From assembly GCA_977017575.1 (NCBI GenBank), contig CDRNVI010000007.1, positions 124,001 through 188,000 of the forward strand: a DNA stretch of 64,000 nt, given 5' to 3'. Made by a program: the position numbers and the translations under genes. Numbering within the stretch: the stretch's first letter is position 1; the number at the start of each line of letters is the position of its first letter. This DNA comes from Paramoeba atlantica (Eukaryota > Protista > Discosea). The notes beneath the pieces were generated by a model that searched no databases, was not told where the DNA came from, and worked only from the letters and a program-made list of their open reading frames with translations. Of this stretch, positions 8,937 through 62,701 are shown piece after piece.

Positions 8937-9402
8937 AGCTGAGGGGCTGCGGGTGAGGCCCGATAAGAGATCATGCGAGATCACGCGAGATCTCTCTAGA
9001 GCGGATTTGGCTCGGGAGGGTGGTTGGACGACCTCAAAACGAGATCACGTGAGATCACGCGAGATCATACCCGCAGCCCCTCAGCTAATGCCAGGGGGTC
9101 TAAAATTCGTAAAACTTGGCCAATTTTGGAAAATAATAGCGCAGTCGAGAGCTCTCACACAGCCCTCCTGTGGATACAGGTATGTCGTTTCCCATGCTTT
9201 TACACACGTGCTTTCACGTTTCAGGGAAAAGCGTCAGAATTTCTTAAAAAACTTGCACTCAACGTTTTTGACCCTCCCACCATTTTATAAAACTGAGGGG
9301 CTGTAGGTGAGGACCAAAATGAGATCGCGTGAGATCACGCGAAATTTTTCGGAAACGGATTTGGCTCGAAAGGGTGGTTGGACGATCTCAAAACGAGATT
9401 AC
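8937..9402. repeat. Composite repeat: two ~115-bp direct copies carrying GAGATCACGC 10-mers; first copy bounded by an 18-bp perfect inverted repeat
   Basis: AGCTGAGGGGCTGCGGGT (8937-8954) and its inverse at 9069-9086; second copy at ~9293-9402. Confidence 0.75.
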
Positions 9403-9692
9403 GAGGGATTAGCATTAACTGATCCCCTCTGTATCTCTTCACATTCCTCTTCATCATCACTTAAAAGTTAGCTTTCGAGAGATTTACGCATCGTACAAGA
9501 GTATTGCGGTGCATCGTTTCAACCCTCAATTGGAATTTGATTTGTTACGTTGAGTTGTTGGGCGAAGTCAATCGACGCGCGCACGTACTGTGTTCCTTCA
9601 TTTGCACACCACCCTTACTCTTTTCTCCTTTCCAGAGCTCTATTTCTCCCTCCTTTCTCCCTCTCTTTATTTTGCCATTCTCCCCCCACCCC

Positions 9693-9920
9693 ATGTCCTC
9701 CCTCCTCCTCCCTCTCCTCCTCCTCTCCTCCCTCCTCCTTCCCCCTCCCTCCCCCCTCCCCATTTCCCTCACGGACAACCCCCACACCCACACGACCGCT
9801 CCCACCACCCGTCGACACAAACCCCTCCCCCCTACCCTCCCCCCTACCCTCCCCCCTACCACCACGAAAACCACCACCACGACCCGTCGTGTCGGTACGC
9901 TCCCCGGTCCACCCCCTTCC

Positions 9921-9952
<32 letters not shown>

Positions 9953-11381
9953 CCACCCCCCTCCCCGTCCCCTCCTGCACAAACCCCCCGACGCGCCCTT
10001 ATTCCAGGAACGTTCCCGTCTCTCCACCCACCCCTCCGCGGCCCCAAGTCGGCTCACCCCGATCACCCCCGTCCGTGGTCGGCACCCCTCCCCCTCTTCG
10101 TCCTCGATGCGTAGCTCCCGCTCTTCTTCTTCATCGTCTTCCTCTTCCTCTTCCCCGCACACCACCGAGGAGGATGTCATTCACCATTTAGTAGAGCTAC
10201 TCGATCTCAACCTTAGCCGCATCCAGGAGCCCTACAGCCCCTGGGAGGCCCCCTCCGGGGTCCCCATGCGCATTGACGTGTTCGACCGCAGCAGCTGGTG
10301 GGACCTGGTCGCGGGGCGACGGAAGGTGTGTGTGCCGCGACCGGTGCTGCTGAAGATCCGTTTACAGAGACGCTCCGAGAATGGACACGTGACCTGGGCC
10401 GACCCGTTTGAGGAGCAGGGGGTGGAGGTGAACACGGGGAGGCTGCGACGGGAGTTGCACTGGTTCGCACGGAGCTGGAAGACGCGTGCGCAGGTGGTGC
10501 TGGGGGATTGGGTGACGGCGCTGGTCGCGGGGGCGGTACGGAAGTATATCCGGCATGCGTTTTTTACGGTTCACTCGGAGTGTTTGGCGTGTGATGTGCT
10601 GCAGCTGCAGTGGTTTCATCAGGATAGTGTGATTTTGATTAGTGACGTGGACGGGTCGCAGATTACGGATGTGGCGAAGTTCACCAATGGGCTGTTTCCC
10701 CAGCTGGATGGGATGGATACCACAGCGGATACCACCACTGTGAACAACTTCCTCCACATGTACGAGACCGTGATGGCCGGAGACGCGATCCGGGACTTTC
10801 GCTATCCTGCCTCCCGGGTACCACGTCCCGCGCTGGACTACGTCTATGCCTTTAACGCGCTGTTCTCTTCCTTCACCGCAGGGGATGTGCCGCGTCCGGC
10901 GTATGAGGACGACACCCCGGCGGCGTACCTCCCGTTTGAGCCCACCCTGCTGCCGATTCAAGTCGACCACCCGGGGGCTGTGGACGTGTTATGGTGTCCC
11001 AGTCGGCCGCACCCTACCCCATGCAAAGGTGCACTCCCACTGAGCTATGCGGTCTACAACGAGGAGTGCTTCGTGCTGGTAGACACCGGGAAGGCTGAGG
11101 GGCTGGGGATCCTCCGGCACCAGACCGGGGAGGTGTTCAGCGTGCGTGAGCGAGGTCGGTTTCTCCAGCGGTACGGGGAGGAGCCGTGCGCGCTCACGAT
11201 CACGGACCCCGCCAAGCAGGTCTACCACCTGTCGCTGGAGGAGGGTGCGATTCTGCATTGCCTCCCCGTCAGTGAGAGCCACACAACGGAGCCCTTCCAG
11301 GAGGTGGCTCAGGAATGGGTGTATAACAATGTGAAGTTTATGGACGGAGGTATGTGTGCAGTAGGCATACGGGGGGACTAA
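9693..11381 (+). CDS. Signal-peptide, Pro/Ser/Thr-rich protein with a HAD-like (LNS2/App1-type) phosphatase motif
   Basis: First ATG at 9693 gives MSSLLLPLLLLSSLLL. VILISDVDGS resembles the DxDx(T) HAD motif I. Family assignment is tentative. Confidence 0.55.
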
Positions 11382-12168: not shown

Positions 12169-12331
12169 TACAATTTACAAAAAGTGGGGGTTTGTGTCCT
12201 CTGTAGTTCGTTTAGTGAGTTGGCTTAACACTTTTTTTGCTCTAATTGTATGAAAGCACCAATTATCAAATCACTGTCTTATTGAAGTGTTTAGTATATT
12301 TTATTCTTCACGCCTCTCGAGTCTTCACAAA

Positions 12332-13792
12332 ATGCCACTCGATATAAATCTCTTTCGCATTGAGAAAGGCGGCAATCCAAATCTCGTACGTGAAAGCCAA
12401 CGTCGCCGATGGAGCAATGTTAAACTGGTGGATGAGGTCATTGAGCTTGATACCCAATGGAGACACGCCCAGCACTCCCTCGAAGGCATGAACAAATCCG
12501 TTGGACTGTGCAGCAAGAAAATCGCAACCGAAATGAAAAAATCCAAGAACACAGCGCCCTCTCTTGAGTCCCTGACGCTCACAACCGAACCGATCGAGCT
12601 CCCCCACGAGCTCCTCGAGTCCTGTCGCACCGGGAAGCTCATGATGGACAGCCTTGACTCCTTGACGGTACCAAAACTCAAAGCCCTCTCCAAGCACATC
12701 TCGTCCCATCTCGTCCCACAGGAGATGGAGCGTGCGAAGACGCTTGAGGCGGCACGAGACCACGTACTCGCAGCCATCGGGAATATTGTCCACGAGTTTG
12801 CCCCGGTCCACGAGAGTGAGGAGCACAACGCTGTGCTGCGCACCCGCGGGGACTGTACCACACGTAAACCCCAGCACCATGTGGACCTCATGGAGGCGCT
12901 CGGGGTGATGGACTGCAGCGAGCGCGTCACCCGGATGTCCGGGGGCCGGGCCTACGTGCTCCACGGGGATCTGGTGCTCCTCCATGTCGCGTTGCTGCAT
13001 TACGGGATGAGTTTTCTGGCAAAACGGGGCTATATGCCGTTCTACCCGCCGGTTTTTATGACCAAGGAGTGTATGGGGGAGGTCGCCCAGTTGTCGGATT
13101 TTGACGAGCAGCTCTACAAAGTCACCGGGGAGGGGGAGGATAAATATCTGATTGCCACCTCCGAGCAACCGCTATGTGCGTACCACCGCAACCGGTGGTA
13201 CAATGAGGAGGACCTGCGGGTCCCGAAACGGTATGCGGGTTACTCCTCGTGTTACCGTAAAGAGGCCGGCAGTCACGGCCGCGACACCCTTGGTATCTTT
13301 CGTGTGCACCAGTTTGATAAAATCGAGCAGTTTGTGGTGTGTAGTCCCCGGGATGAAATCTCGTGGACCGTCCATGAGGAGATGATGAAATGTGCGGAGG
13401 AGTTTTACACGAGTCTTGGGATTCCCTACCGGGTGGTGGATATAGCCTCCGGCGCGCTGAACAACGCCGCTGCCCGGAAGTGGGATCTTGAGGCGTGGTT
13501 TCCTGGAAGTGGCAAGTTTCGTGAGCTTGTGAGTTGTTCAAACTGCACGGACTACCAGTCCCGTAGTATTGGGTGCCGGTATGGTCCCACCACCCGCGGG
13601 ACACTGGCCTCCGCGCTGAAGGAACATCCACACATGCTCAACTCGACGCTTTGTGCAATACCACGTACGATTTGTTGTCTTGTGGAGAATTATCAAACAG
13701 AGACTGGGGTGATGATACCAGAAGTGCTTCGTCCGTTCCTGCCCACTGTGAATGAAGAAATGAAATTCGTAACGAAAACGACGCAGGAATAG
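12332..13792 (+). CDS. SARS: Cytosolic seryl-tRNA synthetase
   Basis: MPLDINLFR..GGNP..VRESQRRR N-terminus; YLIATSEQP, YRKEAGSHGRDTLGIFRVHQF and ELVSCSNCTDYQSR class II motifs. Confidence 0.97.
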   Translation: MPLDINLFRIEKGGNPNLVRESQRRRWSNVKLVDEVIELDTQWRHAQHSLEGMNKSVGLCSKKIATEMKKSKNTAPSLESLTLTTEPIELPHELLESCRTGKLMMDSLDSLTVPKLKALSKHISSHLVPQEMERAKTLEAARDHVLAAIGNIVHEFAPVHESEEHNAVLRTRGDCTTRKPQHHVDLMEALGVMDCSERVTRMSGGRAYVLHGDLVLLHVALLHYGMSFLAKRGYMPFYPPVFMTKECMGEVAQLSDFDEQLYKVTGEGEDKYLIATSEQPLCAYHRNRWYNEEDLRVPKRYAGYSSCYRKEAGSHGRDTLGIFRVHQFDKIEQFVVCSPRDEISWTVHEEMMKCAEEFYTSLGIPYRVVDIASGALNNAAARKWDLEAWFPGSGKFRELVSCSNCTDYQSRSIGCRYGPTTRGTLASALKEHPHMLNSTLCAIPRTICCLVENYQTETGVMIPEVLRPFLPTVNEEMKFVTKTTQE

Positions 13793-17537: not shown

Positions 17538-19400
17538 ATGTCTGACGACGTAGAAACTCAAACGCCTGAGAAAAATCACGGCACCGAAGAAGCTGATGGG
17601 GATCGACGAAGCACACGCATACGGAGGGATGCAGTTTACTTTAGTCCGACGGCCGCGACACCAGTGCGCAAAGTGACGTATGAAGTCCCCGTAGACGGCA
17701 GTGGCGTACCTCTTAAAGATTTCCCTGAATGGAAGAAAATATTGCCTACAGATTGCACTCCTCTATACCGGATACTTGTTGGACGTCCCGGACTAAAGCA
17801 ATCGCGAAAAAGAGAATTAATGAGCTTCCGTGGCTTTCTGGGATCTAGTTCAACTAGAGGGATTACGGCTTCCCACTTAACTAAAGCGATTGAATCACAA
17901 ACTCGTAAGGAACTTAAACCTATTCTAAAGACTTTCAGAATTTTAGGGAAAACTGTAGCGGAGCAGAATCAACATTTGAGTGAGTTTTTGATGAGTCCTG
18001 TACTATCTCTTGATGCGCAAAAAAAGGAAAAGAGAACCGTGACAAAGAAGAAAAGGAAAACTCGGAAAACCAATAAAAAGCTAAAAACTGTTTCCCGAAT
18101 TAAAAGTGCCAAGGGACGATCTACGAAAACGCCCGCCAAGTCTGGCAAATCGGCCACAGCGAAGTCAAAGAAAAAGGATACATCTCAAAAAAAGAAAGAA
18201 CGTCCCACCAAACGAGGTAGAAGTGATAGCAAAAAGGAAGAGACACCACAGCCACCTGCCAAACGGCAACGCCAAGTTAAAGAAAAAAAGAATGTGGTAG
18301 TTGAAGAAGTTATACCGTCTAATAATGAAATTCAGAACTTTATAAGCACTATGATGCGTACTACCTCGGTTGAGGACGCCGAATCTCTTTCCCTAACGGC
18401 TGTCCGTTCTCGTATAGAGGCGCACTACAACCTTGCACAGGGCTCGCTCAAAGAGAAAGCCAATGAAATTCGTTCATTTATTGAACTTGCATTCGCAGAA
18501 CTGGAAAAAATAGAGCATGGCGCAAGCGATTCTGCAACAACCGCCGTGGCAATGCAAGAAATAGAAGAAGCAAGTCCTTTGAGTGAAACTCCGGCCGTAG
18601 AGCGAACTGTGGCGGAAGCCAGTGCTCCACCCGAGAAGATACCGGAGTCCACTTCAGAAGAAATTGCATCATCTACTGTTGACAACATTATCGTAGCGCA
18701 CCCACCCAGTACGCACTCCACTCCCATAAAGTCTCAAACAAAAGCGCCATCCGAACAGTCAACTCCGATTCGAGAGGCACCACTTACCCCCGAGCAAGCG
18801 CTCTCCGCACTGGCAACTCCCGCACGTGAAACGGCCACACCTGTGACAACTACTCCTTCACACCTCTCGAGTCCAGTGGTTCAGATCACTGCAGCTGTCA
18901 CCCCGGAAACCACAAGCCGCAGGGCTCAAAGCACGGAGGCACTCAGTTCGGTAAGTCCTGCGAAATCACCAGCTGCGTGTTCTCAACCGCTAGCCACTTC
19001 GGAGCCAACCGAAAGCGTTGTGGAAAACACGTCTGAGGTATTAGGCGTTCCATCTGAAGCTGGACAGGATATGCAGGAAGAAGAAGTACAGAGCCGCTCT
19101 GGAGGGATGGCAGATCCTCTCAAGGAAGGAAAGGATGCCCCTGAGAATGCAGCGGTTGTGGATGTAGCCGCGGTGAAGGTCAGTGTACCCGAGGTCAACG
19201 AGGAGAAAGCAATCCCACAAGAAGTAAGCACTCCCGTGGAGTTCACCCATGCTGTGACAGAAGAAACGACTCCTAACGAACCGTCTGATAGTGCAGATGA
19301 AGTCAATGTCTCAAAACCTCAGGTAGAGACGAGTACTCCAACAGATTCCTCCCCTGAGAAATATCTTCCGGAAATTTATAGTCCAGACGAGGAAAATTAG
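17538..19400 (+). CDS. DEK-like chromatin protein with a long acidic S/T/P-rich tail
   Basis: RRSTRIRR, LYRILVGRPG...KRELMSFRGF (DEK N/SAP-like), a basic linker and PSNNEIQNFI...LSLTAVRSRIEAHY (DEK_C-like). Confidence 0.7.
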   Translation: MSDDVETQTPEKNHGTEEADGDRRSTRIRRDAVYFSPTAATPVRKVTYEVPVDGSGVPLKDFPEWKKILPTDCTPLYRILVGRPGLKQSRKRELMSFRGFLGSSSTRGITASHLTKAIESQTRKELKPILKTFRILGKTVAEQNQHLSEFLMSPVLSLDAQKKEKRTVTKKKRKTRKTNKKLKTVSRIKSAKGRSTKTPAKSGKSATAKSKKKDTSQKKKERPTKRGRSDSKKEETPQPPAKRQRQVKEKKNVVVEEVIPSNNEIQNFISTMMRTTSVEDAESLSLTAVRSRIEAHYNLAQGSLKEKANEIRSFIELAFAELEKIEHGASDSATTAVAMQEIEEASPLSETPAVERTVAEASAPPEKIPESTSEEIASSTVDNIIVAHPPSTHSTPIKSQTKAPSEQSTPIREAPLTPEQALSALATPARETATPVTTTPSHLSSPVVQITAAVTPETTSRRAQSTEALSSVSPAKSPAACSQPLATSEPTESVVENTSEVLGVPSEAGQDMQEEEVQSRSGGMADPLKEGKDAPENAAVVDVAAVKVSVPEVNEEKAIPQEVSTPVEFTHAVTEETTPNEPSDSADEVNVSKPQVETSTPTDSSPEKYLPEIYSPDEEN

Positions 19401-27188: not shown

Positions 27189-27470
27189 AAGCCTCTGAGT
27201 GCAGCGCCATACGTGTTGGGTGAGCTTATCCGTGTTGGATTGTTTCTCTACGCAAAACAATGAGGTGGTCTGGTAGTGGCAGAAGGTAAATTTTAAATTT
27301 AGTTTGCTATTTTCCATATTCTATGTAATGGGAATAAATCTTTTATGGGAAGAAACAAAGGTTGTACCAAATATTTAATCTATTTTAAGACCTGGCTATA
27401 TTTACACAAACATTTTACACCCATTTTCCTATCCCGTGTTTTGCCGCACGGAGAGCAACAATAGTTCAGT

Positions 27471-28604
27471 ATGCGAAAAGAAAGAAGAAAACCTACGGGA
27501 CTGACACTAGCGGAGGGTATGTGCCCTACTGAGGCAGAATCTCACCTCGGACTACGGATTACGGACACCCTTACACTTCAGATCGATCTCCCGCTAGCTA
27601 GAGAAGGAAATGGGGAGGATAGTCCCACACCTCATACCCAAGTGCGCGTAAAGCGGGATGGCGTAAAAAGAGATACCGAAAGCGCCACACAAAAGATACG
27701 ATTCGAGGATTTGAAAATTGGCCAAGTTATCGGAGAAGGATCACAAGCGAAAGTCCGCAAAGTACTTCACCCCGCAAGTGGCACCATATACGCCCTCAAA
27801 CAACTAACCTTCAGCGATGACCGCGACGCCATGCGCAAAGTCCTCCAAACCGAACTCCGCAGTGTCGTCCTCATGCCCCCCCACCCCCACCTCGTGAAAT
27901 CCTTCGAGGCCTTCTTCCGCAACGGGGTCCTCATGATCCTCCTCGAGCACATGCCCTACGGCACCCTCTGTGACATCTACCACCACACCACCACCATCCC
28001 CGAACCCCCGCTCTCCGTCATCGCCGCCCACCTCCTCTCCGGTCTCGTCTTCCTGCGCCACCAAAAAGTCGTCCACCGGGACATCAAACCCACCAACCTG
28101 CTCGTCTCCCCCACCGGGGTCACCAAGATCTCCGACTTCGGGGTCAGTGCCTACGTGCAGCCCAGCCGGCTCGACCTTACCCTGGCCCCCGTGGGGTCGA
28201 CCCCGTACATGTCCCCCGAGCGGGCCCGCGGGGACCCGTACTCGTACCCCAGCGACGTGTGGAGCGCGGGGGTGACCATCGCGGAGTGCGCCCTCGGGGC
28301 CTACCCCTTCGGCGCCCCCCTCAAGGCGATGGCCTTTGAGCTCAGCGCGGCGATCGCGGAGGCCCGGGTGGTGGTGGGGTGGGGGGAGACGGGGCCCTCG
28401 GAGGCGCTGCGGTCGTTCGTGGGGCTGTGCCTGACGCCGGACCCCCGGGAGAGGCCCTCGGCGGAGACACTGCTGTCGCACCCGTTTGTGGTGGCGGGGA
28501 GGGGGGAGGAGGGGAGGGTGGAGGCGTGGTTGAGGGGGGTGTATGGGAGGGGGCAGGGGAGAGAGAGAGAGGGTAAGGTGTCGCAATGTTGTGAGCGGGG
28601 ATGA
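27471..28604 (+). CDS. MAP kinase kinase (STE7 family)
   Basis: IGEGSQAKV, YALK, HRDIKPTN, ISDFG, VGSTPYMSPER and SDVWSAG motifs. Confidence 0.92.
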   Translation: MRKERRKPTGLTLAEGMCPTEAESHLGLRITDTLTLQIDLPLAREGNGEDSPTPHTQVRVKRDGVKRDTESATQKIRFEDLKIGQVIGEGSQAKVRKVLHPASGTIYALKQLTFSDDRDAMRKVLQTELRSVVLMPPHPHLVKSFEAFFRNGVLMILLEHMPYGTLCDIYHHTTTIPEPPLSVIAAHLLSGLVFLRHQKVVHRDIKPTNLLVSPTGVTKISDFGVSAYVQPSRLDLTLAPVGSTPYMSPERARGDPYSYPSDVWSAGVTIAECALGAYPFGAPLKAMAFELSAAIAEARVVVGWGETGPSEALRSFVGLCLTPDPRERPSAETLLSHPFVVAGRGEEGRVEAWLRGVYGRGQGREREGKVSQCCERG

Positions 28605-28983
28605 AGGGTTGGGATGAGGGTGGGGGAGAGGGGAGAAGTTGCGGCCGTAGGTCAGGGTTGGGGCAACAACCTGGCGTTGTGGTGTTGTACGAAAACCGTA
28701 GCGGAACAATCAAGAAGCGGAACACGCTGTTCGTGCTTGTGGTCGGGTAGGAGAAATCGCTACATTGGTGTCGACCTAAATGCTGAAATTCCTCCGCAGT
28801 GGGCTTATGTTTTGTTTGGGCCTCATCGGGGGATGCCTCGCTTCGGAAAAACCATAAAGGAGATTTTCCAAGTTCACAATTAGTGCCTTGTGCAGTTGTT
28901 GCGTTATTAACATGAAGTATTAAAATTCTCTGCGAAAAAATTAGTCTTTTTTTCAAGAAACAGTGCTCATAAACGGACATGTA

Positions 28984-29749
28984 CACTATCGTTCAGCTAT
29001 AAGTCCCCCCCTTTATTTTTGGGTCGCGCGTCCGTTTGACCTAATTCCAGCGGCAAACGAGAGATCTCGATCTCTAGCCTATCTTTGCCGGTCTTCGTTT
29101 TTTGTAAGAACTTAATATACGCTTTTGGCACTCAAAATACTGGTCAAAAATGGCACTTTCCAATGTACAGTCAAATTTTCCCTTTTTTTTCTCATTGACA
29201 CTACCCGTTTTATACCCATGGTGAGGAACCACAGGTCGAGTTACCTCAACTCGGAGCGTACGACGCTCGCAATGGGCATTTCGTTTGTTATTGAACGAAA
29301 ATGCGGTGCTTCCACCACTTCCATCTCTAAAAAATATAAAGTTGATAAAACAAAATGGTACGAAAATGGGTAAAAATGTACAATGAGAAAAAAATGTGTT
29401 CAGAGTACTTAAAACATACACCTTCTTGTATGAACAAGGTGTTGGAGAGCGGGGGTTGGAATATCGGATATTAAGCTTGTCTTTGTGTAATCTTCTTTTC
29501 CTGCGGTGAGTGTATTTATGGGGTTTTACCCGGCAAATATATCAAAAAATGGAACATTTTTGTAAAAAAATCATTTGTTCGGCTCATTTTTTTCAAAAAA
29601 TAATTCGATCCTAATGAGTCGAGAAAAACCAGTTTAAACGTCGGGAAACGCACTTATGTAAAATTCTCTACACGTTCAAAAAAAAGATGATAAAAAACAG
29701 ACCTGTTTTTCAAAATTCGAGGGGGGGGACTTATAGCTGATTGTTAGTG
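28984..29749. mobile_element. TA-flanked MITE (Tc1/mariner-type ends)
   Basis: TA|CACTATCGTTCAGCTATAAGTCCCCCCC ... GGGGGGGACTTATAGCTGATTGTTAGTG|TA; no credible ORF inside. Confidence 0.82.
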
Positions 29750-30061: not shown

Positions 30062-30682
30062 CGGAATTGAGCTCGTTGGCCCGAACTGCCAACTAAGTTT
30101 GATGGCGCATGGTATAAATCAGTTGAGGTTTTCCTATGAAGTTGGATATAAGTCGTAAATAATTTTTCAATACTTTACCTCGAGATGCCTCCATCTTACT
30201 GCATCCACGTGCCCCCCATCTTGGTGTACCAGTGAACTATGATTTCAACGCGGCTCTTAAAAACGTAGTAATTGTTCGTGCTCTTTCCCTGTCGTCAATG
30301 TAGAAGGCAGGGGGAGGCACAGATTGCAAAGGGGGTGTCAGAGGGTCTTTATTAATGGGGGTCACAGTGTACAGTGGTTCTCTAGTCAAGGGGGTTAAAC
30401 GGGAGTTCACAGCCCTACTAGTTTAATTTACTAACTAAAGTACGTTTCGCTAGAGAGAAATGATTTTTGCTGCGAATTCGAGCAAATTAAAATTGTCGAA
30501 AATTTTACTCAAGTGGTAATGAGCTTACATATTATTCTTCAACTTCGTAATTTCTTCGACTCGTAATAAGCCTATCTTCTTCTTATTTTATGGTAAAGTG
30601 ATATGTGCAGAGCCAAAAAGAATTAAATTCACTAAATGATTTACAATATATTGAAAATGTGAATTGCGAACCTATTCATTCA

Positions 30683-44992: not shown

Positions 44993-45273
44993 CCCAATAT
45001 TGCACAAAAAATATTTTTGTTGCCCCCGAAAAAGAATATTTGAGGACATACAATACTTCTGTTCTGAGATACAGGGGTGAAAACCTCGTGGTGGCGGGGT
45101 CTAAAATTTGTAAAAATTGTCTAATTTTGGTAAATAATAGCGCATTCGAGAGCTCTCGCAGAGTTGTATGTTTTAGCACTGATCTTTGTGTTTAGCACTG
45201 TATCTTTGTGTTGGGAAATTTATGGCATCGAAAATTATAAAATACATTTTTTTTGAAAGTGTGCAATATTGGG
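44993..45273. mobile_element. piggyBac-type MITE (281 bp)
   Basis: TTAA|CCCAATATTGCACA ... TGTGCAATATTGGG|TTAA: perfect 14-bp TIRs, CCC/GGG ends and a TTAA duplication. Confidence 0.8.
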
Positions 45274-45412
45274 TTAATCTGACCCCCTTTTTTACTACCC
45301 TACCCTATTTTACTCACAAAGAAACTATCCTTTCCTTTCCTTTATCTCTCCCCTTTCCCTCATCCTTTTTCCTTTCCAAAACACTTTTTCTTTCCTTTAT
45401 CTTTCCCCCTCC

Positions 45413-45985
45413 ATGTCCGTCCCCCCCGACACCGTCGCCCTCTCCAACCTCCACCCCCGGGTCGACGAGTCCCTTCTCTGGGAGCTCGCCACCCAGGCCG
45501 GCCCCGTCCGCTCCCTCGCGCTCCCCCGCGACCCCCTCGAGGGCACCCACCGCGCCCTCGCCTTCGTCACCTTCCGCACCCCCCGGGACGCCGCCTACGC
45601 CTGTGTCGTCCTCAACGGCACGCGGCTCTACGACCAGGCCCTACGGGTGGCCCCGAGGGGGGGCCCCGCGGAGGGGGCCGGGGGGGTGGGGGGTGAGGGG
45701 ATCAAGGGGGGGGGCTCCGGGGAGGTCTCCTATATCCATATCACGGGGTTGGACCCTGGGGTGGATGAGGCGGTCCTGGCGGAGACGTTCCGCGGGTTTG
45801 GGGGGTTGGTGGAGCTCCCGGTGGTGTATCGGGATGGGGTGACGGGGAGGAGTCGGGGGACGGCGTTGGTGGGGTATGGGAGTGTGGGGGAGGCGGAGCG
45901 GGCGATAGCGGCGATGGACGAGCAGTATTTTCATAATCGAGTGATACGGGTGGAGAGGAGTACGAGGAATGTGGTGAAAGGGTAG
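45413..45985 (+). CDS. SF3B4: U2 snRNP SF3b subunit 4 (SAP49/Hsh49), two RRMs
   Basis: NLHPRVDESLLWELATQAGPV...PRD...AFVTF...DAAYAC.VLNG.RLY...LRV, followed by a second RRM. Confidence 0.9.
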   Translation: MSVPPDTVALSNLHPRVDESLLWELATQAGPVRSLALPRDPLEGTHRALAFVTFRTPRDAAYACVVLNGTRLYDQALRVAPRGGPAEGAGGVGGEGIKGGGSGEVSYIHITGLDPGVDEAVLAETFRGFGGLVELPVVYRDGVTGRSRGTALVGYGSVGEAERAIAAMDEQYFHNRVIRVERSTRNVVKG

Positions 45986-46246
45986 GGGGGAGGAAAGGGG
46001 GTTGAGAAAACCTCGTGGTTGTATTCATTTTTGTGAGGGTTAGATTCCTGATTCCTGTATGATATGTCAAGAGGTACGTTGCTGTTGTGAGGTGTTTTCT
46101 TTATCATGCTTCTATTTTTTTATTCTAGGTTAGGCACTAGTTTCGTCATTTTCTATGAGGAACGTTCTTGTCTACGTCTGCGGAACTAAATTTTACTGTC
46201 TGACCCGATAAGGGGGTTGTAGTCTACCACCGCTTTTCTACTCCTT

Positions 46247-53995: not shown

Positions 53996-56536
53996 ATGAG
54001 CAGAGTGGCTGACGGTCTATGGCGTTCGGAGGATATGGTATACGTACGGCTACAAATGCAACGTGAGACGGCGCATGAAACTATAAAACGTATTGGTCTT
54101 TTGGGTGTGGCAGAATTCATTGATCTGGAAAAGAACACCTCATGCCTCTCTCGAAAGTTTTCTTTAGAACTACGACGCTGTGAGGAGCTGGAGAGAAGGG
54201 TTGACTACTTGATAAGCCAGACCGATCAGATTGAATCTCCTGAGGATCACGGTTCTTGCATTCTCCCGCTTGGCCTTACTCAGGCAGCACCCACGCTGGA
54301 CTCCTTGGATGCCAAACTAGAGGAGTACGAAAAGGACGTCCGGGACCTCAACGCAAAGTTCGAACAGATGAACGCCGAGATGAATCGTAACCGCGAGTTC
54401 CACGAGGTGCTTCGCCGAGAGACTGCCTTCTTCCACGGCGGGGATGAGGAACTCACCAACCGCTCCGTTGAACTCGCCTCTCGTGAGCTCCGAGAGCCCG
54501 AACGCGGGCTAAGTCTCCTTACCGGGGTGCTGGAGGACGACAAACTCCACGACCTGGAGAAACTCATCTACCGTGCCACCAAAGGGAACTCCTTTGTGCG
54601 GTTCGACCCCATTGAGGACACCTTCCTCGAGGGCCCAGGCCACTCCCCCCAACACAAAACCGTCTTTGCCGTGTTCTTCTCCGCTCCCCGGATTCACCAA
54701 CGCCTCATGAAAGTGTGTCAAACCCTGGAGGCCAACCTCTACCCCTACCGTGAGGGGATGAGTGCCGCGATCCGCGCCCAGCTCACCAAACAGATCAGCG
54801 CACTGCGCCAAGCTCTTGCCGAGACCCAGCGCTGTCGGGACCAGACCCTCGCGGACGTCCAGCGCGAGATCCACACCTGGAAGGCGTTGGTGCAGACCAA
54901 ACGCGCAGTGTACCAAACACTCAACAAAATCACCTTTGCCGGGATGACCTGCGTCGCGGAGGCCTGGGTCCCGAAAGCGGAGCTCGGGGCGCTGCGTCGG
55001 GTCGTCACCGAGGCCGAGGTCGCGACCGGGGTGATGGCGAGTACGGTGGTGCAGGTGGCGCCCCCCGGGGTGGGGAGAACCCCCCCGACGTTCTTTAGGG
55101 TGGATAAGTACACCGAGACGTTCCAGGGGATTGTGGAGAGCTACGGGGTGGCGCGGTATAAGGAGGTGAACCCGGCGGTGCTTTCCGTGGTGACGTTTCC
55201 GTACCTTTTTGGGGTGATGTATGGAGATGTGGGCCATGGGGTGATGCTGACGGCCGTGGCGGTGTATCTGATTGCGCGGGAACGGTATTTTTTGCGTAAC
55301 TCGCAAGGGGAGATGTTTGATATGATTTTCGGGGCTCGATATTTGCTCGTGTTGATGGGCGTCTTTGCGACTTATATCGGGATGCTGTATAATGACACGT
55401 TTGGGCTTGTGCTTGGGGCTTTTCCCTCGGGTTACCAGTGGCTTCGAGGAGAAGGGCACGATTTTTTGTCTCACGAGGAGTCGGATCTGTCTCCCACGCA
55501 AGGGTTCGTGACGTGGTTTGGGGTGGACTCCGCATGGGCAGAGACGGAGAACAAGCTGGAGTTTATGAACTCGTTGAAAATGAAAGGAGCAATTATTATT
55601 GGTGTACTTCAGATGTTCGCCGGGCTGTTCTTGGGGTTGTTAAATCATTTGTACTTCCGCGACTGGAAGCGAGTGTGGTTCGAATTTGTGCCAGAAGCTG
55701 TGTTTCTGATGTGTACCTTTGGTTACATGGCTATACTTATTCTATTGAAGTGGTGTACCGCTTTCGGTTCTACGCATGACGCACCGTCCTTGCTAGAGAC
55801 CATGACGAATTTCTTCTTGGCGCCAGGCACCGTACTACAGCCTCTGTATGCGGGACAAGCTGGGATGCAAATTTTCCTTTTACTAGTGGCGTTTCTTATG
55901 ATTCCCACGATGTTGTTTCCAATTCCTTACCTGGAGTGGCGAGCGCACAAGAAGCGGTGCTCCGAGGCAGCCGAAAAGGCACGCACTCTTCCCGTCACCG
56001 TTCGATCATGCACGCCTCAACCAGGTTCGCAGAACGTGTATGCCAGCGATAATACGGAACCTTTTATAGATGGCGACAATTCTCGAATGCCTATCCACGA
56101 AGTTGATACGGATGACGGTGGTGCGCACGATCTTGAGACTGCTTCCGTCCCCGCGTTTGACCTCAGTGAAGTGGTCATCCACCAAATGATTCACACGATT
56201 GAATTTGTTCTGGGTTGTGTGTCGAATACTGCAAGTTATCTTCGTCTCTGGGCGCTCTCCCTGGCACATGCAGAACTCAGTGAAGTTTTCTGGAATTTTG
56301 CCTTCTTGAAGGCATTAGACATGGATTCTGGAAATGGTGTGATCGTGTTCGTGGGGTTCGGAGTGTGGCTTACCGTCACCATTGGTGTTCTTCTGATGAT
56401 GGAAGGGCTTTCAGCGTTTCTTCATGCGCTACGTCTTCACTGGGTAGAATTTCAAAACAAATTTTATCTTGCAGATGGGAAGAAATTTTCACCGTTCGTA
56501 ATCAGTGATGCAGCTTTATATGAGAGCTGTACTTAA
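53996..56536 (+). CDS. VPH1: V-type ATPase V0 subunit a
   Basis: GLWRSEDM, PPTFF, YGVARYKEVNP, FPYLFGVMYGDVGHG, SNTASYLRLWALSLAH (essential Arg) and LRLHWVEFQNKFY. Confidence 0.97.
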   Translation: MSRVADGLWRSEDMVYVRLQMQRETAHETIKRIGLLGVAEFIDLEKNTSCLSRKFSLELRRCEELERRVDYLISQTDQIESPEDHGSCILPLGLTQAAPTLDSLDAKLEEYEKDVRDLNAKFEQMNAEMNRNREFHEVLRRETAFFHGGDEELTNRSVELASRELREPERGLSLLTGVLEDDKLHDLEKLIYRATKGNSFVRFDPIEDTFLEGPGHSPQHKTVFAVFFSAPRIHQRLMKVCQTLEANLYPYREGMSAAIRAQLTKQISALRQALAETQRCRDQTLADVQREIHTWKALVQTKRAVYQTLNKITFAGMTCVAEAWVPKAELGALRRVVTEAEVATGVMASTVVQVAPPGVGRTPPTFFRVDKYTETFQGIVESYGVARYKEVNPAVLSVVTFPYLFGVMYGDVGHGVMLTAVAVYLIARERYFLRNSQGEMFDMIFGARYLLVLMGVFATYIGMLYNDTFGLVLGAFPSGYQWLRGEGHDFLSHEESDLSPTQGFVTWFGVDSAWAETENKLEFMNSLKMKGAIIIGVLQMFAGLFLGLLNHLYFRDWKRVWFEFVPEAVFLMCTFGYMAILILLKWCTAFGSTHDAPSLLETMTNFFLAPGTVLQPLYAGQAGMQIFLLLVAFLMIPTMLFPIPYLEWRAHKKRCSEAAEKARTLPVTVRSCTPQPGSQNVYASDNTEPFIDGDNSRMPIHEVDTDDGGAHDLETASVPAFDLSEVVIHQMIHTIEFVLGCVSNTASYLRLWALSLAHAELSEVFWNFAFLKALDMDSGNGVIVFVGFGVWLTVTIGVLLMMEGLSAFLHALRLHWVEFQNKFYLADGKKFSPFVISDAALYESCT

Positions 56537-56814
56537 GTACAGCTTTGTACTGGAGCGCACGAACTATTATGTGCTTGTATGTACTCTGAGGTTACTCAAA
56601 ATCTAAGACTGTTTTTGATATCCGGCGCATCCGAAATCGGATATGGGTAGCATTTGATTTGACGCAGCTTTCAACCCTCTTATTGAGCAACCTTTTTTGC
56701 TGAAAACTGTCTTTTGGAAACGCTCAAATCATATAGATAATCTTGCGTTGTACATCCTTATTTACATTCTACATTCCACTAAAGACTTTTACTTTTAAAA
56801 AGACTCGTTTCTAC

Positions 56815-59800
56815 ATGTCTGCAGACAGGGGACGTGGCACAAGGGGTCGGGGATCTAAGGCTATGGCTACTCCCACGCCGGCGCGTAACGTACACTCCGC
56901 GATACCTCCGCGAACCGTCTCGGCTCCGAATGACATCGGAAACCTTGCTCGAGCAGCACTTGTAGAACAGTCTTCCCGAGCCTCTCAAGGGAAGCCCATT
57001 CCCCCTGTTCGAGGTCCAAATCAACGTGACCCTCCTCCGAAACCGAAGTCAGGCAAGGGAGAAAAAGTAGAAGTCGTAGATAGCGGAGCACGAAAGAGCA
57101 CAGCGGAACCCCAACCCGGACCACCTTTCTCCAACCGTCCCAGAAAACCCGTCCTACACGAACCCACCGGACCAGCTGCGAGATATCCCGAAACCACCTA
57201 CACCAACCCCCCACCACCATTCGTCGATCGCAGACACCCTCAGCACCCCCAACCGATTGGCTACTACGACCATCCCCACCCCGAGGTTCCCCGCATGCAC
57301 GCCTCCCAGCCGATGCAGCCTGTCATGCACTACGCTCCTCACTACGCTTCCCATCACTTTCCGCATGACCCCTACGGGGGTACGCACGCGATCCCTGCAG
57401 GGTACGCCATGGCCTATGGGGTTCGAGGCCCAGAAGAAATACGACACCCCGGGACTACTGGGGTTTTTTACCCCCCGATGAGAATACCCCAACCCTCACC
57501 AGCATATCATAGGGATATGCCGGTCAAGGATGACACCTCTTTAGAAAGCGCTTCTGTACCGGCGCCTGTGAGCGAACCACCGCAGCCTGTTTTGGATATC
57601 GTTATCACGGATGCCAGTGGGAGACGTCACGATCTGCAGGACTGGGTCGCGACCTCGGAACACAATAAAGAGGAGGAAGTAAGGGTTTCGGCAGAGGAAA
57701 CGGACAAGACGTTGGATGGGGAAGAAACGGGACTATCCAAGGATAGTGTTCCGAGCTCAGCGGAGGAAAAACACGGAGGTGAGGAAAAGGAAGATGAAAA
57801 AATATCTCATGATTCAGCTGAAAGGTCTGAAAAAGAGGGGGATATCACGGATTCTTCAAGGACACAAGATGTTTCACAGCATAAACAAGAAGAGAACAAC
57901 GACGTTACACCCTCCAGCTCAGATGATATCTCAGAATCTATGGCTAACCTTAATATCTTATCAGCTCAGGAAACGCAATTATCCTCGAAGGAAGAAGTCG
58001 ATACACAGGATCTTGTGGAAGAGCAAACGAGCTCTGCACAAAGGACACATAATGCAGGTACGGATGTATCCCCAGTGGATGCCATATTCGAGATGTTCTT
58101 GCGACATCGCAAAGCATGGAATCCCGAGACATGTCCTCCGTTTCCCGGAGTCCTTGAAGTAAGACAATCTATAGAAATGTATAACAAGCGTGAAATGAAA
58201 GATAATGTTCTTGTGTACCACGAACCTTCTCGCGAGGAGCATGCGATCATATTCGGAACCGAGGTAAACAGAGCGCACAGTGTACGAGATATATTCACAA
58301 ACAAATCCGAGAATCCTTTTACACATCGCAATAGAAATCGAGAATCCGAATCTGAGGCAACTAAAAAGCATCTCCAGAGCATATTAAACAAGCTGTCCGA
58401 AGCGAATTACCGTTCGCTATGCACCGAACTGCTAAATACTAAATTTAATGCTCTATGTCGAGAACCCGAGTTTATGAAGGACGTTGTAAACATGTTCTTT
58501 GATAAAGCTATTAACGAAACAGCCTTTGCGCCTCTTTATGCACAATTTTGTCAGGACATTTATGCACACTGGAAAAGACAAGCGGTGGAGGATCGCTCTG
58601 ATCCGACAGACAAAAGTACACACCAATCTACGACGTTTCGCCGACAACTCCTTGAACATTGCAGAGAAGCCTTCATGAGCGGCTCTCATGTGCAGAGCGA
58701 TCCCCTTAGCGAGGTCAAGGAGGTCCCAGCAATGGACGATCCAGTCCACTGGAAACGCACCGTCGGAACTGTGAAATTTATAGGTGAGCTTTTCAAACTT
58801 CGACTCATAGCGAAAGGCATTATGCATGAAATCTCTTACAAAATGCTTTTTAGTCCTCTTACTGATAGAATGAGGGATAATTCTTTACTCCTTTTTTGTG
58901 AGCTGATGGAATCTATTGGTCCGCTTCTTGAAAACTCTGAGTCGGAAGTAGGGAATATGCACATTTACTTCGAGAATGTTTGTGTACTCTCCGCTACCTA
59001 TCCCAACATTCGCGTCCGATTTAAGCTTCTCAATTTATTGGAACTTCGACAACGTGACTGGGCAGGAGTTTCCAGCACAGCGCTGAGTAAAACATATGGT
59101 CCGTACTCCCAGGCTATGCCATCACAAGAGATTTCGTCGAAATCCGTCATGAGTTCCTCCGCTTCTCGGCCCCTACCGCCCCACTCCACGGGCAACTATG
59201 CCCGGCCTTCCTTGCGCGGAAGTCGAAGAGAGAACGAATCCCCTAGTCGTGGTAGCTACGCTGAACGTATGGTATCACCACTGGCGCCTAACACTGCGAA
59301 ATCTTTTCCTGCCGTCCGATGCGTCCTGTCGAGGACCTCCAGCGAACGATCGGATCTCTCGGCAATGAAACTACCAACGAGGTCCTCGTCTTCCGATTTG
59401 GATTCTGTACTCAATACACCCGACATTAACGCTAGACTTTCGAATTTGGGCTCAGCGACTACCGACCAGATTACACAAAAACTCGAGGAGAAAGCTATGA
59501 TGGCATTACAGGAAAGTATTCCTTATGCCATTGAAATCGTGGAAGTGTTTAAAATTAACGACTACAACCTTTTCCTTCAAAAGTGCATTGATACGCTGTG
59601 CAGCTCTGTCCAAAGATTTGGTGATGCGAGGTGTGCGTTTGGAAGCTTCTCAAAATCGATCCTCAAAAATACAGACGCGAAATCAGAACTTTCCATTGCT
59701 CTTAACTCAGTTATCCGAAATTGGATTTCTCGGGAGCAATATACTGATGCGCCAAAGCTCTGGGTGACTTTTGCGGAGATCGTTTCGTCACTTATAGAAA

Positions 59801-60396
59801 GTGGGCTACTTCCGAGGGGATATTGGAATGACGCCTTACAGATTGTGCTACAAGCCGGGGAAGCCGACATGAACTTAAAAGGTTACATTGAAGCTGTTCA
59901 TCTTAAAACAGACACGTCAGATATCACTGGCATCGCAAAGGATGTAACAAATATTCCGTATCTTCGAACAATGTCTGTCGCGGAGTGGCCTGAAAGCTTC
60001 GAATTATTAGTCAACGCAGATGTTGAAGAGTCCGCACTTAAGGAGTACAAGGCTATAAGGAAAGTGAAGTGGGTTTTTCCTTCAAAACGTTACGATGCTT
60101 TGTGGGCCAGCCGATGCGCTTCCGTTCTTTTTACATTTATGCTAAAAGAAAAAATTTCATATGAATCGGAGATGTGTGCACGGTTATTGGATTTCGCCGC
60201 TTTTATCGCCGACGGTCGTTCTGTAAAAGAAAGAGCACGAAACGAATTAATACTGCTAATTGAGTTGAATCATTCTGCACACGCTTTAGATATGAAAGAG
60301 GACGTACAAGTGCTTACTGATATTTTGGTGCAGAGCAAGATAATATCGACAGAGACAGTCACAGAGTGTAAAAATCTACTAAAACTTATACCTTAA
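56815..60396 (+). CDS. EIF4G: eIF4G-family translation initiation factor (MIF4G domain)
   Basis: SILNKLS..NY, FDKAINE..FAPLYAQFC, FRRQLL..C...F and GTVKFIGELFK; paralog not determined. Confidence 0.88.
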   Translation: MSADRGRGTRGRGSKAMATPTPARNVHSAIPPRTVSAPNDIGNLARAALVEQSSRASQGKPIPPVRGPNQRDPPPKPKSGKGEKVEVVDSGARKSTAEPQPGPPFSNRPRKPVLHEPTGPAARYPETTYTNPPPPFVDRRHPQHPQPIGYYDHPHPEVPRMHASQPMQPVMHYAPHYASHHFPHDPYGGTHAIPAGYAMAYGVRGPEEIRHPGTTGVFYPPMRIPQPSPAYHRDMPVKDDTSLESASVPAPVSEPPQPVLDIVITDASGRRHDLQDWVATSEHNKEEEVRVSAEETDKTLDGEETGLSKDSVPSSAEEKHGGEEKEDEKISHDSAERSEKEGDITDSSRTQDVSQHKQEENNDVTPSSSDDISESMANLNILSAQETQLSSKEEVDTQDLVEEQTSSAQRTHNAGTDVSPVDAIFEMFLRHRKAWNPETCPPFPGVLEVRQSIEMYNKREMKDNVLVYHEPSREEHAIIFGTEVNRAHSVRDIFTNKSENPFTHRNRNRESESEATKKHLQSILNKLSEANYRSLCTELLNTKFNALCREPEFMKDVVNMFFDKAINETAFAPLYAQFCQDIYAHWKRQAVEDRSDPTDKSTHQSTTFRRQLLEHCREAFMSGSHVQSDPLSEVKEVPAMDDPVHWKRTVGTVKFIGELFKLRLIAKGIMHEISYKMLFSPLTDRMRDNSLLLFCELMESIGPLLENSESEVGNMHIYFENVCVLSATYPNIRVRFKLLNLLELRQRDWAGVSSTALSKTYGPYSQAMPSQEISSKSVMSSSASRPLPPHSTGNYARPSLRGSRRENESPSRGSYAERMVSPLAPNTAKSFPAVRCVLSRTSSERSDLSAMKLPTRSSSSDLDSVLNTPDINARLSNLGSATTDQITQKLEEKAMMALQESIPYAIEIVEVFKINDYNLFLQKCIDTLCSSVQRFGDARCAFGSFSKSILKNTDAKSELSIALNSVIRNWISREQYTDAPKLWVTFAEIVSSLIESGLLPRGYWNDALQIVLQAGEADMNLKGYIEAVHLKTDTSDITGIAKDVTNIPYLRTMSVAEWPESFELLVNADVEESALKEYKAIRKVKWVFPSKRYDALWASRCASVLFTFMLKEKISYESEMCARLLDFAAFIADGRSVKERARNELILLIELNHSAHALDMKEDVQVLTDILVQSKIISTETVTECKNLLKLIP

Positions 60397-62360: not shown

Positions 62361-62701
62361 GGAAGCTGGTCACTTTTTCAGGGGGTGGCCAGGTGGCCAC
62401 TTTTTCAAGGGGTGGCCAGCTGGCCACTTTTTCAAGGGGTGGCCAATTGGCCACTTTTTCAAGGGGTGGTCAGCCGGGCACTTTTTCAGGTGGTGGCAAG
62501 CTGGCCACTTTTTCAAGGGGTGGCCAGCTGGCCACTTTTTCAGGGGGTGGCCAGCTGGCCACTTTTCAAGGGGTGGCCAGCTGGCCACTTTTTCAGGGGG
62601 TGGCCAGGTGGCCACTTTCTCAAGGGGTGGCCAGCTGGCCACTTTTTCAGGGGTTGGCCAGCTGGCCACTTTTTCAAGGGGTAGTCAGCTGACTACTTTT
62701 T
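62361..62701. repeat. 27-bp minisatellite, ~13 units, each with a 16-bp palindrome
   Basis: Unit approx. GTGGCCAGCTGGCCACTTTTTCAAGGG; degenerate copies at ~62205-62270. Confidence 0.95.

Follow-up and report, generated by a model that had tools for sequence, protein, structure and literature searches.

A gene for a MAP2K-like protein kinase contains one of at least six mirror-skew GC islands, left behind by a DNA process that is two-sided and oriented by strand. The islands were found in the 64-kb stretch of DNA analyzed here (the window), which belongs to a deep-branching kinetoplastid related to the amoeba symbiont Perkinsela. Five of them are strong flips from C-rich to G-rich DNA and one is weaker (flip positions 10296, 12879, 28227, 45645, 54941 and 57502), giving a frequency of about 1 per 10 kb.

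The kinase open reading frame (27471–28604, + strand, 377 amino acids) matches the Pfam domain Pkinase (E=2e-51), retains the catalytic motifs HRDIKPTN, DFG and SPE, and has best named relatives annotated as MAP kinase kinases, with 50% identity to the Perkinsela protein. Determining codon-position composition in 25-codon bins of this frame, we found a GC3 of 0.36–0.44 upstream, 0.68 from 27771 and then 0.84–1.00, in an island of about 0.9 kb. Its C arm (27771–28145, C3 0.64–0.80) is C-rich on the + strand, and thus G-rich on the outward-running − strand, and begins at a sharp left edge where C3 rises from 0.24 to 0.64 in one 75-bp bin. Fourfold-degenerate sites of this arm carried C at 0.85, G at 0.11, A at 0.03 and T at 0.01, and its twofold sites had a C fraction of 0.86 among pyrimidines together with a G fraction of just 0.23 among purines. 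In the centre (28146–28370), where both drives overlap, GC3 was 0.92–1.00 with C3 and G3 at about 0.5 and 0.45, and the skew changed sign at about 28227. The G arm (28371–28700) is G-rich on the + strand, with G3 of 0.72–0.84 over 28371–28600, fourfold G of 0.87 and C of 0.07, and twofold fractions of 0.86 (G among purines) and 0.50 (C among pyrimidines). It passes the stop codon (28602–28604) and extends about 100 bp into non-coding DNA (28605–28700, G 0.47 and C 0.12), and its G-rich tail has lengthened the C-terminus of the kinase by about 20 residues. A C-rich and then G-rich flip within this gene, with the G-rich half continuing beyond the stop codon, had been the original observation, and the binned composition agreed with it in coordinates as well as base contents.

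A dyad scan using 400-bp arms, in which a flip was called strong if both arms had an excess of at least 40, found no strong G-to-C flip in the 64-kb window, compared to the five strong ones of C-to-G polarity. The scan also recovered all four of the recurrences that had been proposed, at about 10.3, 12.9, 45.65 and 54.95 kb, and added a further one at 57.5 kb. The first island (9601–10800, flip at about 10296, skew −0.8 to +0.4) carries a long left arm rich in C and T, some of it belonging to a low-complexity or non-coding 5′ portion of the open reading frame 9504–11381, and its G arm reaches to about 10750. A weaker island (12551–13650, flip at about 12879) lies inside the seryl-tRNA synthetase gene (12287–13792). 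The saturated island at 45351–46100 (flip at about 45645) spans an entire two-RRM gene (45413–45985) and both of its flanks, with a dyad score of 113, fourfold C of 0.91 in the C arm and fourfold G of 0.83 in the G arm. An unsaturated island (54251–55600, flip at about 54941) lies in the 5′-most third of the gene for V-ATPase subunit a (53996–56536), with C and G falling off gradually with distance from the centre, and another weaker one (56950–57900, flip at about 57502) is found near the 5′ end of a MIF4G-domain gene (56743–60396). Island strength is thus graded across the window. Skew in the arms was about ±0.4–0.9 per 100-bp bin and returned to about zero within some 450–800 bp of the centre, and GC per 100-bp bin was 0.71–0.75 at the centre and lower outward. 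All islands are contained in open reading frames of an array of same-strand genes, can fall anywhere within the gene and share a single polarity, so that the flips indeed occur without any change of gene strand, as had been claimed. Just two of the six G arms reach a stop codon, and two islands lie in the 5′ part of long genes, so anchoring of the islands to gene ends was rejected. As the C arm and the G arm are equally strong within this one-way gene array, the cause must be two-sided and cannot be sense transcription.

A trivial cause, that is an error of assembly or polishing, DNA of foreign origin, an inverted-repeat element or translational codon bias, has in our judgement a practically negligible probability. 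Two independent public sequencing runs, here called X1 and X2, carry the same sequence, in a 5174-bp contig over 26000–28784 with five differences (X1) and a contig covering 27429–28477 with one difference (X2), which excludes an artefact of assembly. Two SNPs and one indel were seen in the MAP2K island in assembler contigs from four small runs. The reading frame and the orthology are unbroken across the island, and codon preference reverses from NNC to NNG inside the gene and persists into non-coding DNA. Shuffling synonymous codons within genes (200 shuffles) gave a dyad score of 57.3 ± 6.9 and a maximum of 76 for MAP2K, as compared to 102 for the native sequence. Hence translational codon bias and protein constraint could be ruled out, and neither low-quality assembly nor codon-shuffled controls, two of the explanations named beforehand as capable of undoing the skew, could produce it. 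A palindrome, hairpin or fold-back was rejected, since the left arm scored no better in local alignment against its own right arm (23.3) than against right arms taken from other islands (23.3 ± 3.6); the fold energy was −355 for own arms and −350 ± 43 for chimeric arm pairs. No k-mer of seven or more nucleotides was common to the centres beyond shuffles, and palindromes at the centres were only isolated ones of 10–12 bp. There were no Rfam or tRNA matches in the window that could serve as anchors, and no repeat copies overlapping an island from which substitutions could be polarized. A spliced-leader relic before the ATG was also considered and discarded, with an 11-nt match alone and no fuller match in the window.

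The site classes showed that the drive consists of changes from A or T to G solely on the strand running 5′ to 3′ away from the centre, with C appearing on the partner strand. In the G arms, the G fraction at twofold purine sites was 0.74 (background 0.39) and fourfold G was 0.63, or 0.83–0.87 in saturated islands, with the C fraction at twofold pyrimidine sites being 0.40, equal to the background of 0.40. The C arms mirrored this pattern. The centres displayed both shifts, i.e. a symmetric bias (fourfold C 0.54 and G 0.37, pyrimidine C fraction 0.76, purine G fraction 0.74), while the arms had only one of them. A Markov model in which only G on the outward strand is favoured reproduced the site classes with a scaled bias of about 2.5–4.5. 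Fourfold G saturation nonetheless exceeded the expectation of an equilibrium model derived from the twofold bias with C taken as neutral, and under that model C-to-G changes may also be driven on the outward strand. Any model of GC-biased repair has to accommodate a G that is favoured on the outward strand and a C that is either neutral there or weakly disfavoured.

GC-biased gene conversion (gBGC) at hotspots resembles the islands in several respects. In reports on such peaks in birds, yeast and the ‘runaway GC’ genes of gerbils (PMC7403616, PMC6573468), these are of kilobase scale, include coding and non-coding DNA with GC3 near 1, vary between lineages and have amino acid changes fixed against constraint. 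The islands likewise have a local rise in GC at silent and non-coding sites that is strongest at the centre. Classical gBGC is, however, strand-symmetric, whereas here each arm gains one strong base and the bias from weak to strong bases is symmetric in the centres only. A symmetric process predicts about equal C and G in the arms and a pyrimidine C fraction of 0.7–0.98, which was not seen; since the choice between T and C on the outward strand stays at background, ordinary symmetric gBGC is rejected for the arms. What is new here is a strand-oriented drive, with G gained on the outward strand only. A literature search yielded no report of mirror skew at recombination hotspots, and in full-text searches such islands appeared undescribed in kinetoplastids or elsewhere.

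The drive overrides protein constraint, rewriting amino acids of the kinase and the V-ATPase including conserved residues. At codon positions 1 and 2 of MAP2K, C in the C arm was 0.60 per codon versus 0.36 in orthologues, and G in the G arm was 0.76 versus 0.40, about half of the MAP2K dyad signal residing in the amino acid sequence itself. Silent sites are taken to 0.85–0.9 of one base, and non-coding flanks (the 3′ flank of MAP2K and both flanks of the two-RRM gene) are affected too. The proposal of a DNA-level effect rather than a constraint on protein or codons is therefore upheld by a pattern that crosses a stop codon, enters non-coding flanks, flips within an open reading frame and changes amino acids. 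The accompanying idea of rewritten synonymous sites was right for the silent positions, although it understated the effect, as non-synonymous positions have been rewritten as well.

The proposed check of whether orthologous genes share the flip gave a negative answer, the island being absent from five MAP2K orthologues. The Perkinsela V-ATPase orthologue was flat over the aligned codons, no island was seen in the 63 kb of Perkinsela loci examined, and island positions were not shared with orthologues at 50–63% identity. In Perkinsela the MAP2K orthologue begins a divergent cluster, and the divergent strand-switch region beside it was AT-rich, unskewed and devoid of an island in three Perkinsela genomes, which rules out an ancestral strand-switch site as the origin of the MAP2K island. 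The loss of position in relatives also weighs against the islands being functional marks on the chromosome that selection on composition maintains, with G-rich outward strands acting through G4 structures, nucleosome exclusion or protein binding. Although such selection would suit the fixed chirality and the confinement of G4 motifs to the arms, it would need to operate on hundreds of sites that are each negligible and to outweigh the constraint on conserved kinase and V-ATPase residues, and the islands have no conserved motif or spacing and are graded in strength. We consider this reading improbable.

The best explanation, which we favour only tentatively, is that the islands are fixed break hotspots at which one-sided copying is followed by mismatch repair that retains G. 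The MAP2K island would then be one of many fixed sites in the genome with a long-acting drive at the DNA level, reaching about 350–450 bp each way from a centre of about 200 bp, and this centre would be a recurrent hotspot of DNA breaks, i.e. of recombination initiation. After 5′ resection, one 3′ tail would copy a donor, presumably the homologue, and re-anneal (synthesis-dependent strand annealing), whereupon short-patch glycosylase repair, of the kind carried out by TDG/MBD4-type and MutY-type activities, would retain the G of G·T and G·A mismatches. In this way any G that the donor contributes to the outward strand would be fixed, and the remaining mismatches would revert to the recipient. 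The predicted outcome is an oriented GC-biased conversion that is C-rich to the left and G-rich to the right when read on either strand, with symmetry confined to the centre, where break positions would scatter. If GC-rich, nucleosome-poor DNA draws more breaks, the islands should be self-reinforcing, a property that would explain why they have no motif, why their strengths are graded and why their positions are specific to a lineage.

Several observations speak for such oriented conversion at breaks. The orientation of twofold purine, twofold pyrimidine and fourfold sites fits it class by class, and in the unsaturated islands total GC is highest at the centre and decreases outward, which resembles a conversion-tract gradient. 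The lack of a centre motif and of arm complementarity, together with the unshared positions, would fit labile hotspots. In published cases, gerbils among them, biased gene conversion has been given as the cause of a comparably strong drive (PMC7403616, PMC6573468), and experiments have shown that break geometry sets a strand bias in mismatch resolution (PMC9001825). Perkinsela has Spo11, DMC1, HOP1 and HAP2 (PMC5601477), and run X1 contained half-depth allele pairs, suggesting a diploid or polymorphic population. Human meiotic-break hotspots also have a two-sided asymmetry that flips at the centre over 1–2 kb, the explanation being which strand is left single-stranded or has just been synthesized (Hinch et al. 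2023, PMC7615360). In that case, however, C and A are lost from the inward 3′ tail and the mutation rate rises modestly, as opposed to the saturating compositional change found here. The mutagenesis at human breaks, in which the single-stranded 3′ tail undergoes C>N and A>N changes (PMC7615360), is opposite in polarity, and the break model therefore needs a bias in conversion or repair synthesis that outweighs damage to single-stranded DNA. It is also challenged by known skew flips of the same polarity being located at replication origins and CpG-island promoters (PMC2817419), by a left edge of the MAP2K island that is too sharp for a simple exponential model of tract length, and by the possibly driven C-to-G changes, which G·T and G·A repair would leave unexplained.

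Those CpG-island promoters and origins (Polak & Arndt 2009, PMC2817419) are also about 1 kb in size and GC-rich, go from C-rich to G-rich at the centre and have the same polarity of A>G versus T>C. By analogy, divergent Pol II transcription or R-loop/G4 formation could start from the island centres, with C-inserting lesion bypass enriching G on the exposed outward non-template strand and the G-rich strand stabilizing R-loops and G4s in a runaway manner, a reading that we find unlikely. The size of about 1 kb, the GC peak and the sign change in skew do match vertebrate CpG-island promoters, and the polarity, T>C upstream and A>G downstream, is as around human CpG islands (PMC2817419). All canonical G4 motifs in the window (11 of 11) lie in arms and on the outward strand; these include four on the + strand of the MAP2K G arm (28366–28394, 28496–28518, 28534–28559 and 28597–28633), four on the − strand in the C arm of the 10296 island, and those on the outward strands of the 45645 island. 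Sharp edges, the lack of any motif and positions particular to one lineage would furthermore all follow from positive feedback, and trypanosome start regions have G- or GT-rich tracts on the sense strand. However, the islands lie within open reading frames of a polycistronic same-strand array, at any gene position and not at gene starts, and antisense initiation would run into polycistronic transcription. The true divergent strand-switch region by the Perkinsela MAP2K orthologue, as described above, has no island. Deamination of C, the main lesion of single-stranded DNA, lowers GC and should have diminished the pyrimidine C fraction of the G arms, which remained at background. The human asymmetry is also slight and long-range, with A>G/T>C ratios of 0.93 upstream and 1.09 downstream (PMC2817419), whereas island skew reaches ±0.9 per 100-bp bin and keeps to about ±450 bp. 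The ratio of observed to expected CpG was 0.99 in the window and 0.73–1.17 in arms and centres; with values near 1 throughout and a genome bulk that is not CpG-depleted, a CpG island of the methylation type was ruled out.

Fixed efficient replication origins, at which bidirectional forks from the centre and a strand-specific asymmetry in errors or repair near the start site would enrich G on the nascent leading, outward strand, seem to us quite unlikely. GC skew does go from negative to positive at the five strong flips, the classical polarity in bacteria and human (Touchon 2005, as summarized in PMC2817419), and the pattern is two-sided, independent of gene direction and has G4-prone DNA on both sides of the centres. 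Replication skews are nonetheless weak and reach the next terminus, while island skew is strong and short-range rather than extending along a replicon. There was also no parallel skew of T over A: AT skew differed between islands, with both A and T depleted, and no consistent A-to-T switch was found at the island centres. Known kinetoplastid origin spacing is wider than one per 10 kb. The only kinetoplastid origin topology described, from stranded SNS-seq in T. brucei (PMC13179062), is that of intergenic origins with poly(dA) upstream and poly(dT) downstream, and with G4s that occupy the plus strand on the upstream side and the minus strand on the downstream side. It shares with the islands a mirror-symmetric strand-specific arrangement and G4-prone DNA within a few hundred base pairs, but the islands are intragenic, GC-rich and reversed in G4 polarity. 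The initial interpretation is partly supported: its core, a DNA-level effect with one polarity, holds, and its list of intragenic origins, Pol II initiation or R-loop sites, and recombination hotspots can be narrowed, with arms that are incompatible with plain symmetric gBGC, no origin topology of the T. brucei type and no island at the Perkinsela strand-switch region.

Returning to oriented conversion, the more general and bolder claim, which we regard as possible but hold with yet more reserve, is that of an undescribed strand-oriented biased repair acting at fixed sites every ~10 kb, where the newly made outward strand of a two-sided repair or initiation event wins when carrying G, and where about 10% of the sequence, with conserved proteins among it, is overwritten by self-reinforcing C|G islands. 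Kinetoplastids have poorly defined promoters, origins and recombination hotspots, and the lineage carrying the islands is a deep-branching one without genetics. If the islands mark sites of breaks, initiation or R-loops, one could read from the sequence alone where a basic chromosomal process takes place, how wide its sites are and which polarity it has. Should such biased repair be true and tied to breaks, the islands would constitute a sequence-readable map of recombination initiation in a kinetoplastid at base-pair resolution, as well as the first case of heteroduplex DNA geometry fossilized as GC skew. The pattern also reveals a non-adaptive force able to rewrite a kinase and a V-ATPase, for which phylogeny and selection tests on such genes must allow.

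The window proved to be a densely packed array of open reading frames (ORFs) with few introns, nearly all of them on the + strand, and with a GC content of about 44%. The ORF at 27471–28604 (+) encodes a protein kinase (Pfam Pkinase, E=2e-51) whose best matches among named proteins carry the annotation MAP kinase kinase (MAP2K); the closest named organism was Perkinsela sp. CCAP 1560/4 (50% identity), and metagenome proteins matched at 59–63% identity. By these protein matches, the source genome is that of a Perkinsela relative, a Prokinetoplastina-like kinetoplastid. The neighbors of MAP2K in the window all lie on the same strand, unlike the divergent arrangement in Perkinsela-like genomes, and downstream synteny with those genomes (RPN7, V-ATPase a, MIF4G) is partly preserved. 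Immediately 5' of the start codon, AATAGTTCAGT at 27460–27470 equals nucleotides 3–13 of the Perkinsela spliced-leader primer (PMC5601477), probably by chance since no longer match was found anywhere in the window.

Third-position composition confirmed that MAP2K holds a C-rich half followed by a G-rich one, as the original prediction had claimed. Upstream of 27771 GC3 was 0.36–0.44, followed by a C arm (27771–28145, C3 0.64–0.80), an island center (28146–28370, C3 and G3 each about 0.5, GC3 0.92–1.0) and a G arm (28371–28600, G3 0.72–0.84). The G-rich run indeed continued past the stop codon, the 96 non-coding bases directly 3' of it having G 0.47 and C 0.12, with background composition regained by about 28800. 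This flank, together with shifted codon positions 1 and 2, bore out the claim of a DNA-level effect rather than a protein constraint. When flips from C-rich to G-rich were scored from the C excess in the left 400 bp and the G excess in the right 400 bp, MAP2K (flip at about 28227) reached 102, as compared to 57.3 ± 6.9 (maximum 76) in 200 shuffles of synonymous codons within each gene. The pattern was thus stronger than in the codon-shuffled control, named beforehand as a refuting test, with the amino-acid sequence carrying about half of the signal. Low-quality assembly, also considered beforehand, was not the case, as contigs of independent public runs reproduced the island (a 5174-bp contig spanning 26000–28784 with 5 differences, and another spanning 27429–28477 with 1 difference). 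Artefactual or trivial causes of the islands were excluded.

In one sequencing run (X1), the (GA)n tract at 28559 was polymorphic for a 2-bp deletion that puts the G-rich C-terminal extension of MAP2K out of frame, and this tail is therefore probably unconstrained. In that run the island region formed a single unbroken contig, in contrast to 30295–30558, where paired contigs of about half depth, differing at 5/136 positions, suggest a heterozygous stretch or two strains.

Scanning the window with a threshold of 40 for both arms gave five sites (10296, 28227, 45645, 54941 and 57502), with a further, weaker site at 12879, thereby recovering all four recurrences predicted at about 10.3, 12.9, 45.65 and 54.95 kb. 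No flip of the opposite polarity (G-to-C) scored 40 or more in the window, the best reaching 36. The islands covered about 10% of the window, and all 11 canonical G4 motifs within the 64 kb lay in island arms on the outward strand, i.e. the strand running 5' to 3' away from the island center. Gene ends did not anchor the islands in the window: of the six G arms, two reached a stop codon, and two islands lay toward the 5' end of long genes.

Several structures and anchors could be rejected. Left arms matched the reverse complement of their own right arms no better than that of other islands (23.3 versus 23.3 ± 3.6), with fold energies likewise no different between own and foreign arm pairs; the short inverted matches between arms are thus due to composition. 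No k-mer of at least 7 nt was common to island centers beyond shuffles, CpG observed/expected was about 1 both in the window overall and in islands, arguing against a methylation logic, and no tRNA or Rfam match was found in the window.

Other elements were also seen. A 62-bp element at 9095–9156 and 45096–45157 (90% identity between copies), each copy a few hundred bp left of a C arm (islands at 10296 and 45645), could be a small dispersed repeat. Adjoining the MAP2K island on the right, the approximately 750-bp element at 28993–29739 with perfect 18-nt terminal inverted repeats (CAGCTATAAGTCCCCCCC / GGGGGGGACTTATAGCTG) is a MITE-like DNA transposon, high-copy as judged from a summed contig depth of 300–800 versus about 74 in the flanks. 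The GC-rich tandem array at 62364–62701 (27-bp period) had a mild positive skew without a C-to-G flip, and hence some GC-rich patches are not skew islands. A small, weak GC patch at 18650–19200, within the ORF at 17538–19400, was C-rich to the left (skew −0.43 to −0.19) and faintly G-rich to the right, and may be a nascent or decaying island.

Aligning MAP2K with five orthologues (63, 59, 55, 50 and 50% identity), including their DNA, revealed third positions that were flat in all five (C3 and G3 each about 0.2 over the whole gene). Codon positions 1 and 2 of MAP2K held 0.60 C per codon in the C arm versus 0.36 in orthologues, and 0.76 G in the G arm versus 0.40. In place of the Lys, Asn and Asp of the orthologues, MAP2K had His, Pro, Thr and Ser on the left side, and Gly, Arg, Val and Ala on the right. 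Its C-terminus was longer by about 20 G-rich codons, and the catalytic motifs were preserved. The V-ATPase subunit a island (54941) displayed a similar, weaker pattern, with a flat Perkinsela orthologue. A DNA-level force thus overrides protein sequence in the islands. If they were instead selected structural marks, a very improbable reading, selection on composition would have to outweigh protein constraint. A flip position common to relatives was not seen in either gene, and 63 kb of Perkinsela loci contained no flip of 40 or more; island positions are therefore lineage-specific, as possibly is their very existence. In three Perkinsela or Perkinsela-like genomes (loci L001, L002/L003 and L004, around 9200–10000) a divergent gene cluster begins with the MAP2K orthologue, and the strand-switch region there is AT-rich and unskewed.

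Dividing silent sites by degeneracy revealed an oriented substitution pattern. Background genes had A.28, C.19, G.20 and T.33 at 4-fold sites, a C fraction of 0.40 at 2-fold sites ending in C/T (Y2) and a G fraction of 0.39 at those ending in A/G (R2). Pooled G arms had 4-fold G of 0.63 (0.83–0.87 in two saturated islands) and R2 G of 0.74, with Y2 C identical to background (0.40). C arms were the mirror image, with 4-fold C of 0.60 (0.85–0.91 in two saturated islands), Y2 C of 0.79 and R2 G of 0.53 (0.23 in MAP2K), and centers were raised in both classes (4-fold C 0.54 and G 0.37, Y2 C 0.76, R2 G 0.74). On the outward strand, A and T are therefore both replaced by G, with the choice between T and C as elsewhere. 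Read on either strand, the pattern is a C-rich block followed by a G-rich one; it therefore cannot be oriented with respect to genes, and the fixed chirality belongs to the process itself. Left and right arms were equal in strength despite one-way transcription, which argues against any by-product of sense transcription. In a small equilibrium model, symmetric GC-biased gene conversion (gBGC) predicted C about equal to G and Y2 C of 0.7–0.98 in the arms, which differs from the observed values, whereas favoring only outward-strand G, at a scaled bias of about 2.5–4.5, reproduced the site-class values, with C on that strand either neutral or weakly disfavored. Full-text literature searches found no published description of such islands, nor of their oriented substitution rule; they are otherwise a variant of known compositional hotspots, either gBGC peaks or CpG-island-like skew flips.

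The original prediction had listed replication origins, Pol II initiation or R-loop sites, and recombination, which could be graded, not decided. Sites of divergent transcription or R-loop/G4 runaway share shape and polarity with CpG-island promoters, and human CpG islands, where T>C prevails upstream and A>G downstream (PMC2817419), have the same sign, but that asymmetry is slight and long-range. The position inside ORFs is odd for such sites, and the silent-site classes gave no sign of the C deamination that exposure of a strand should cause; we consider this explanation unlikely. Fixed origins are more doubtful still. Bacterial and human origins show a minus-to-plus skew jump (PMC2817419), which is the polarity of the islands, but range, strength and kinetoplastid topology all differ: the G4s of T. 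brucei origins are plus-strand on the upstream side and minus-strand on the downstream side (PMC13179062), the reverse of the islands.

Recurrent breaks followed by oriented, biased repair are our tentative explanation, somewhat short of an even chance. Breaks would recur inside a center about 200 bp wide and be repaired by synthesis-dependent strand annealing (SDSA), leaving heteroduplex on either side in which the newly copied outward strand, with donor information, pairs with the old inward strand. If base-specific short-patch repair retained G wherever it is mispaired with T or A and returned other mismatches to the recipient, donor G on the outward strand would be fixed (A>G, T>G), with T/C and A/C differences there unconverted. 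The three assumptions, if all hold, would orient the drive, and scattered break positions would yield a symmetric center. This break and SDSA model matches all four site classes. Strand-biased mismatch resolution set by break geometry has been shown experimentally (PMC9001825), silent-site saturation with fixed amino-acid changes has elsewhere been attributed to biased gene conversion (PMC7403616, PMC6573468), Perkinsela has meiotic genes (PMC5601477), and pairs of alleles at half depth in one run point to heterozygosity. Weak points are the sharp left edge of the MAP2K island (a change inside 75 bp), 4-fold sites more saturated than the 2-fold sites predict in the equilibrium model, and human meiotic breaks, where the bases mutated are C and A of the single-stranded 3' tail (PMC7615360), so that G would accumulate on the inward strand, the opposite sign. 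Should GC-rich, nucleosome-poor DNA draw more breaks, the islands would be self-reinforcing, which would explain their absent motif, graded strengths and labile positions.
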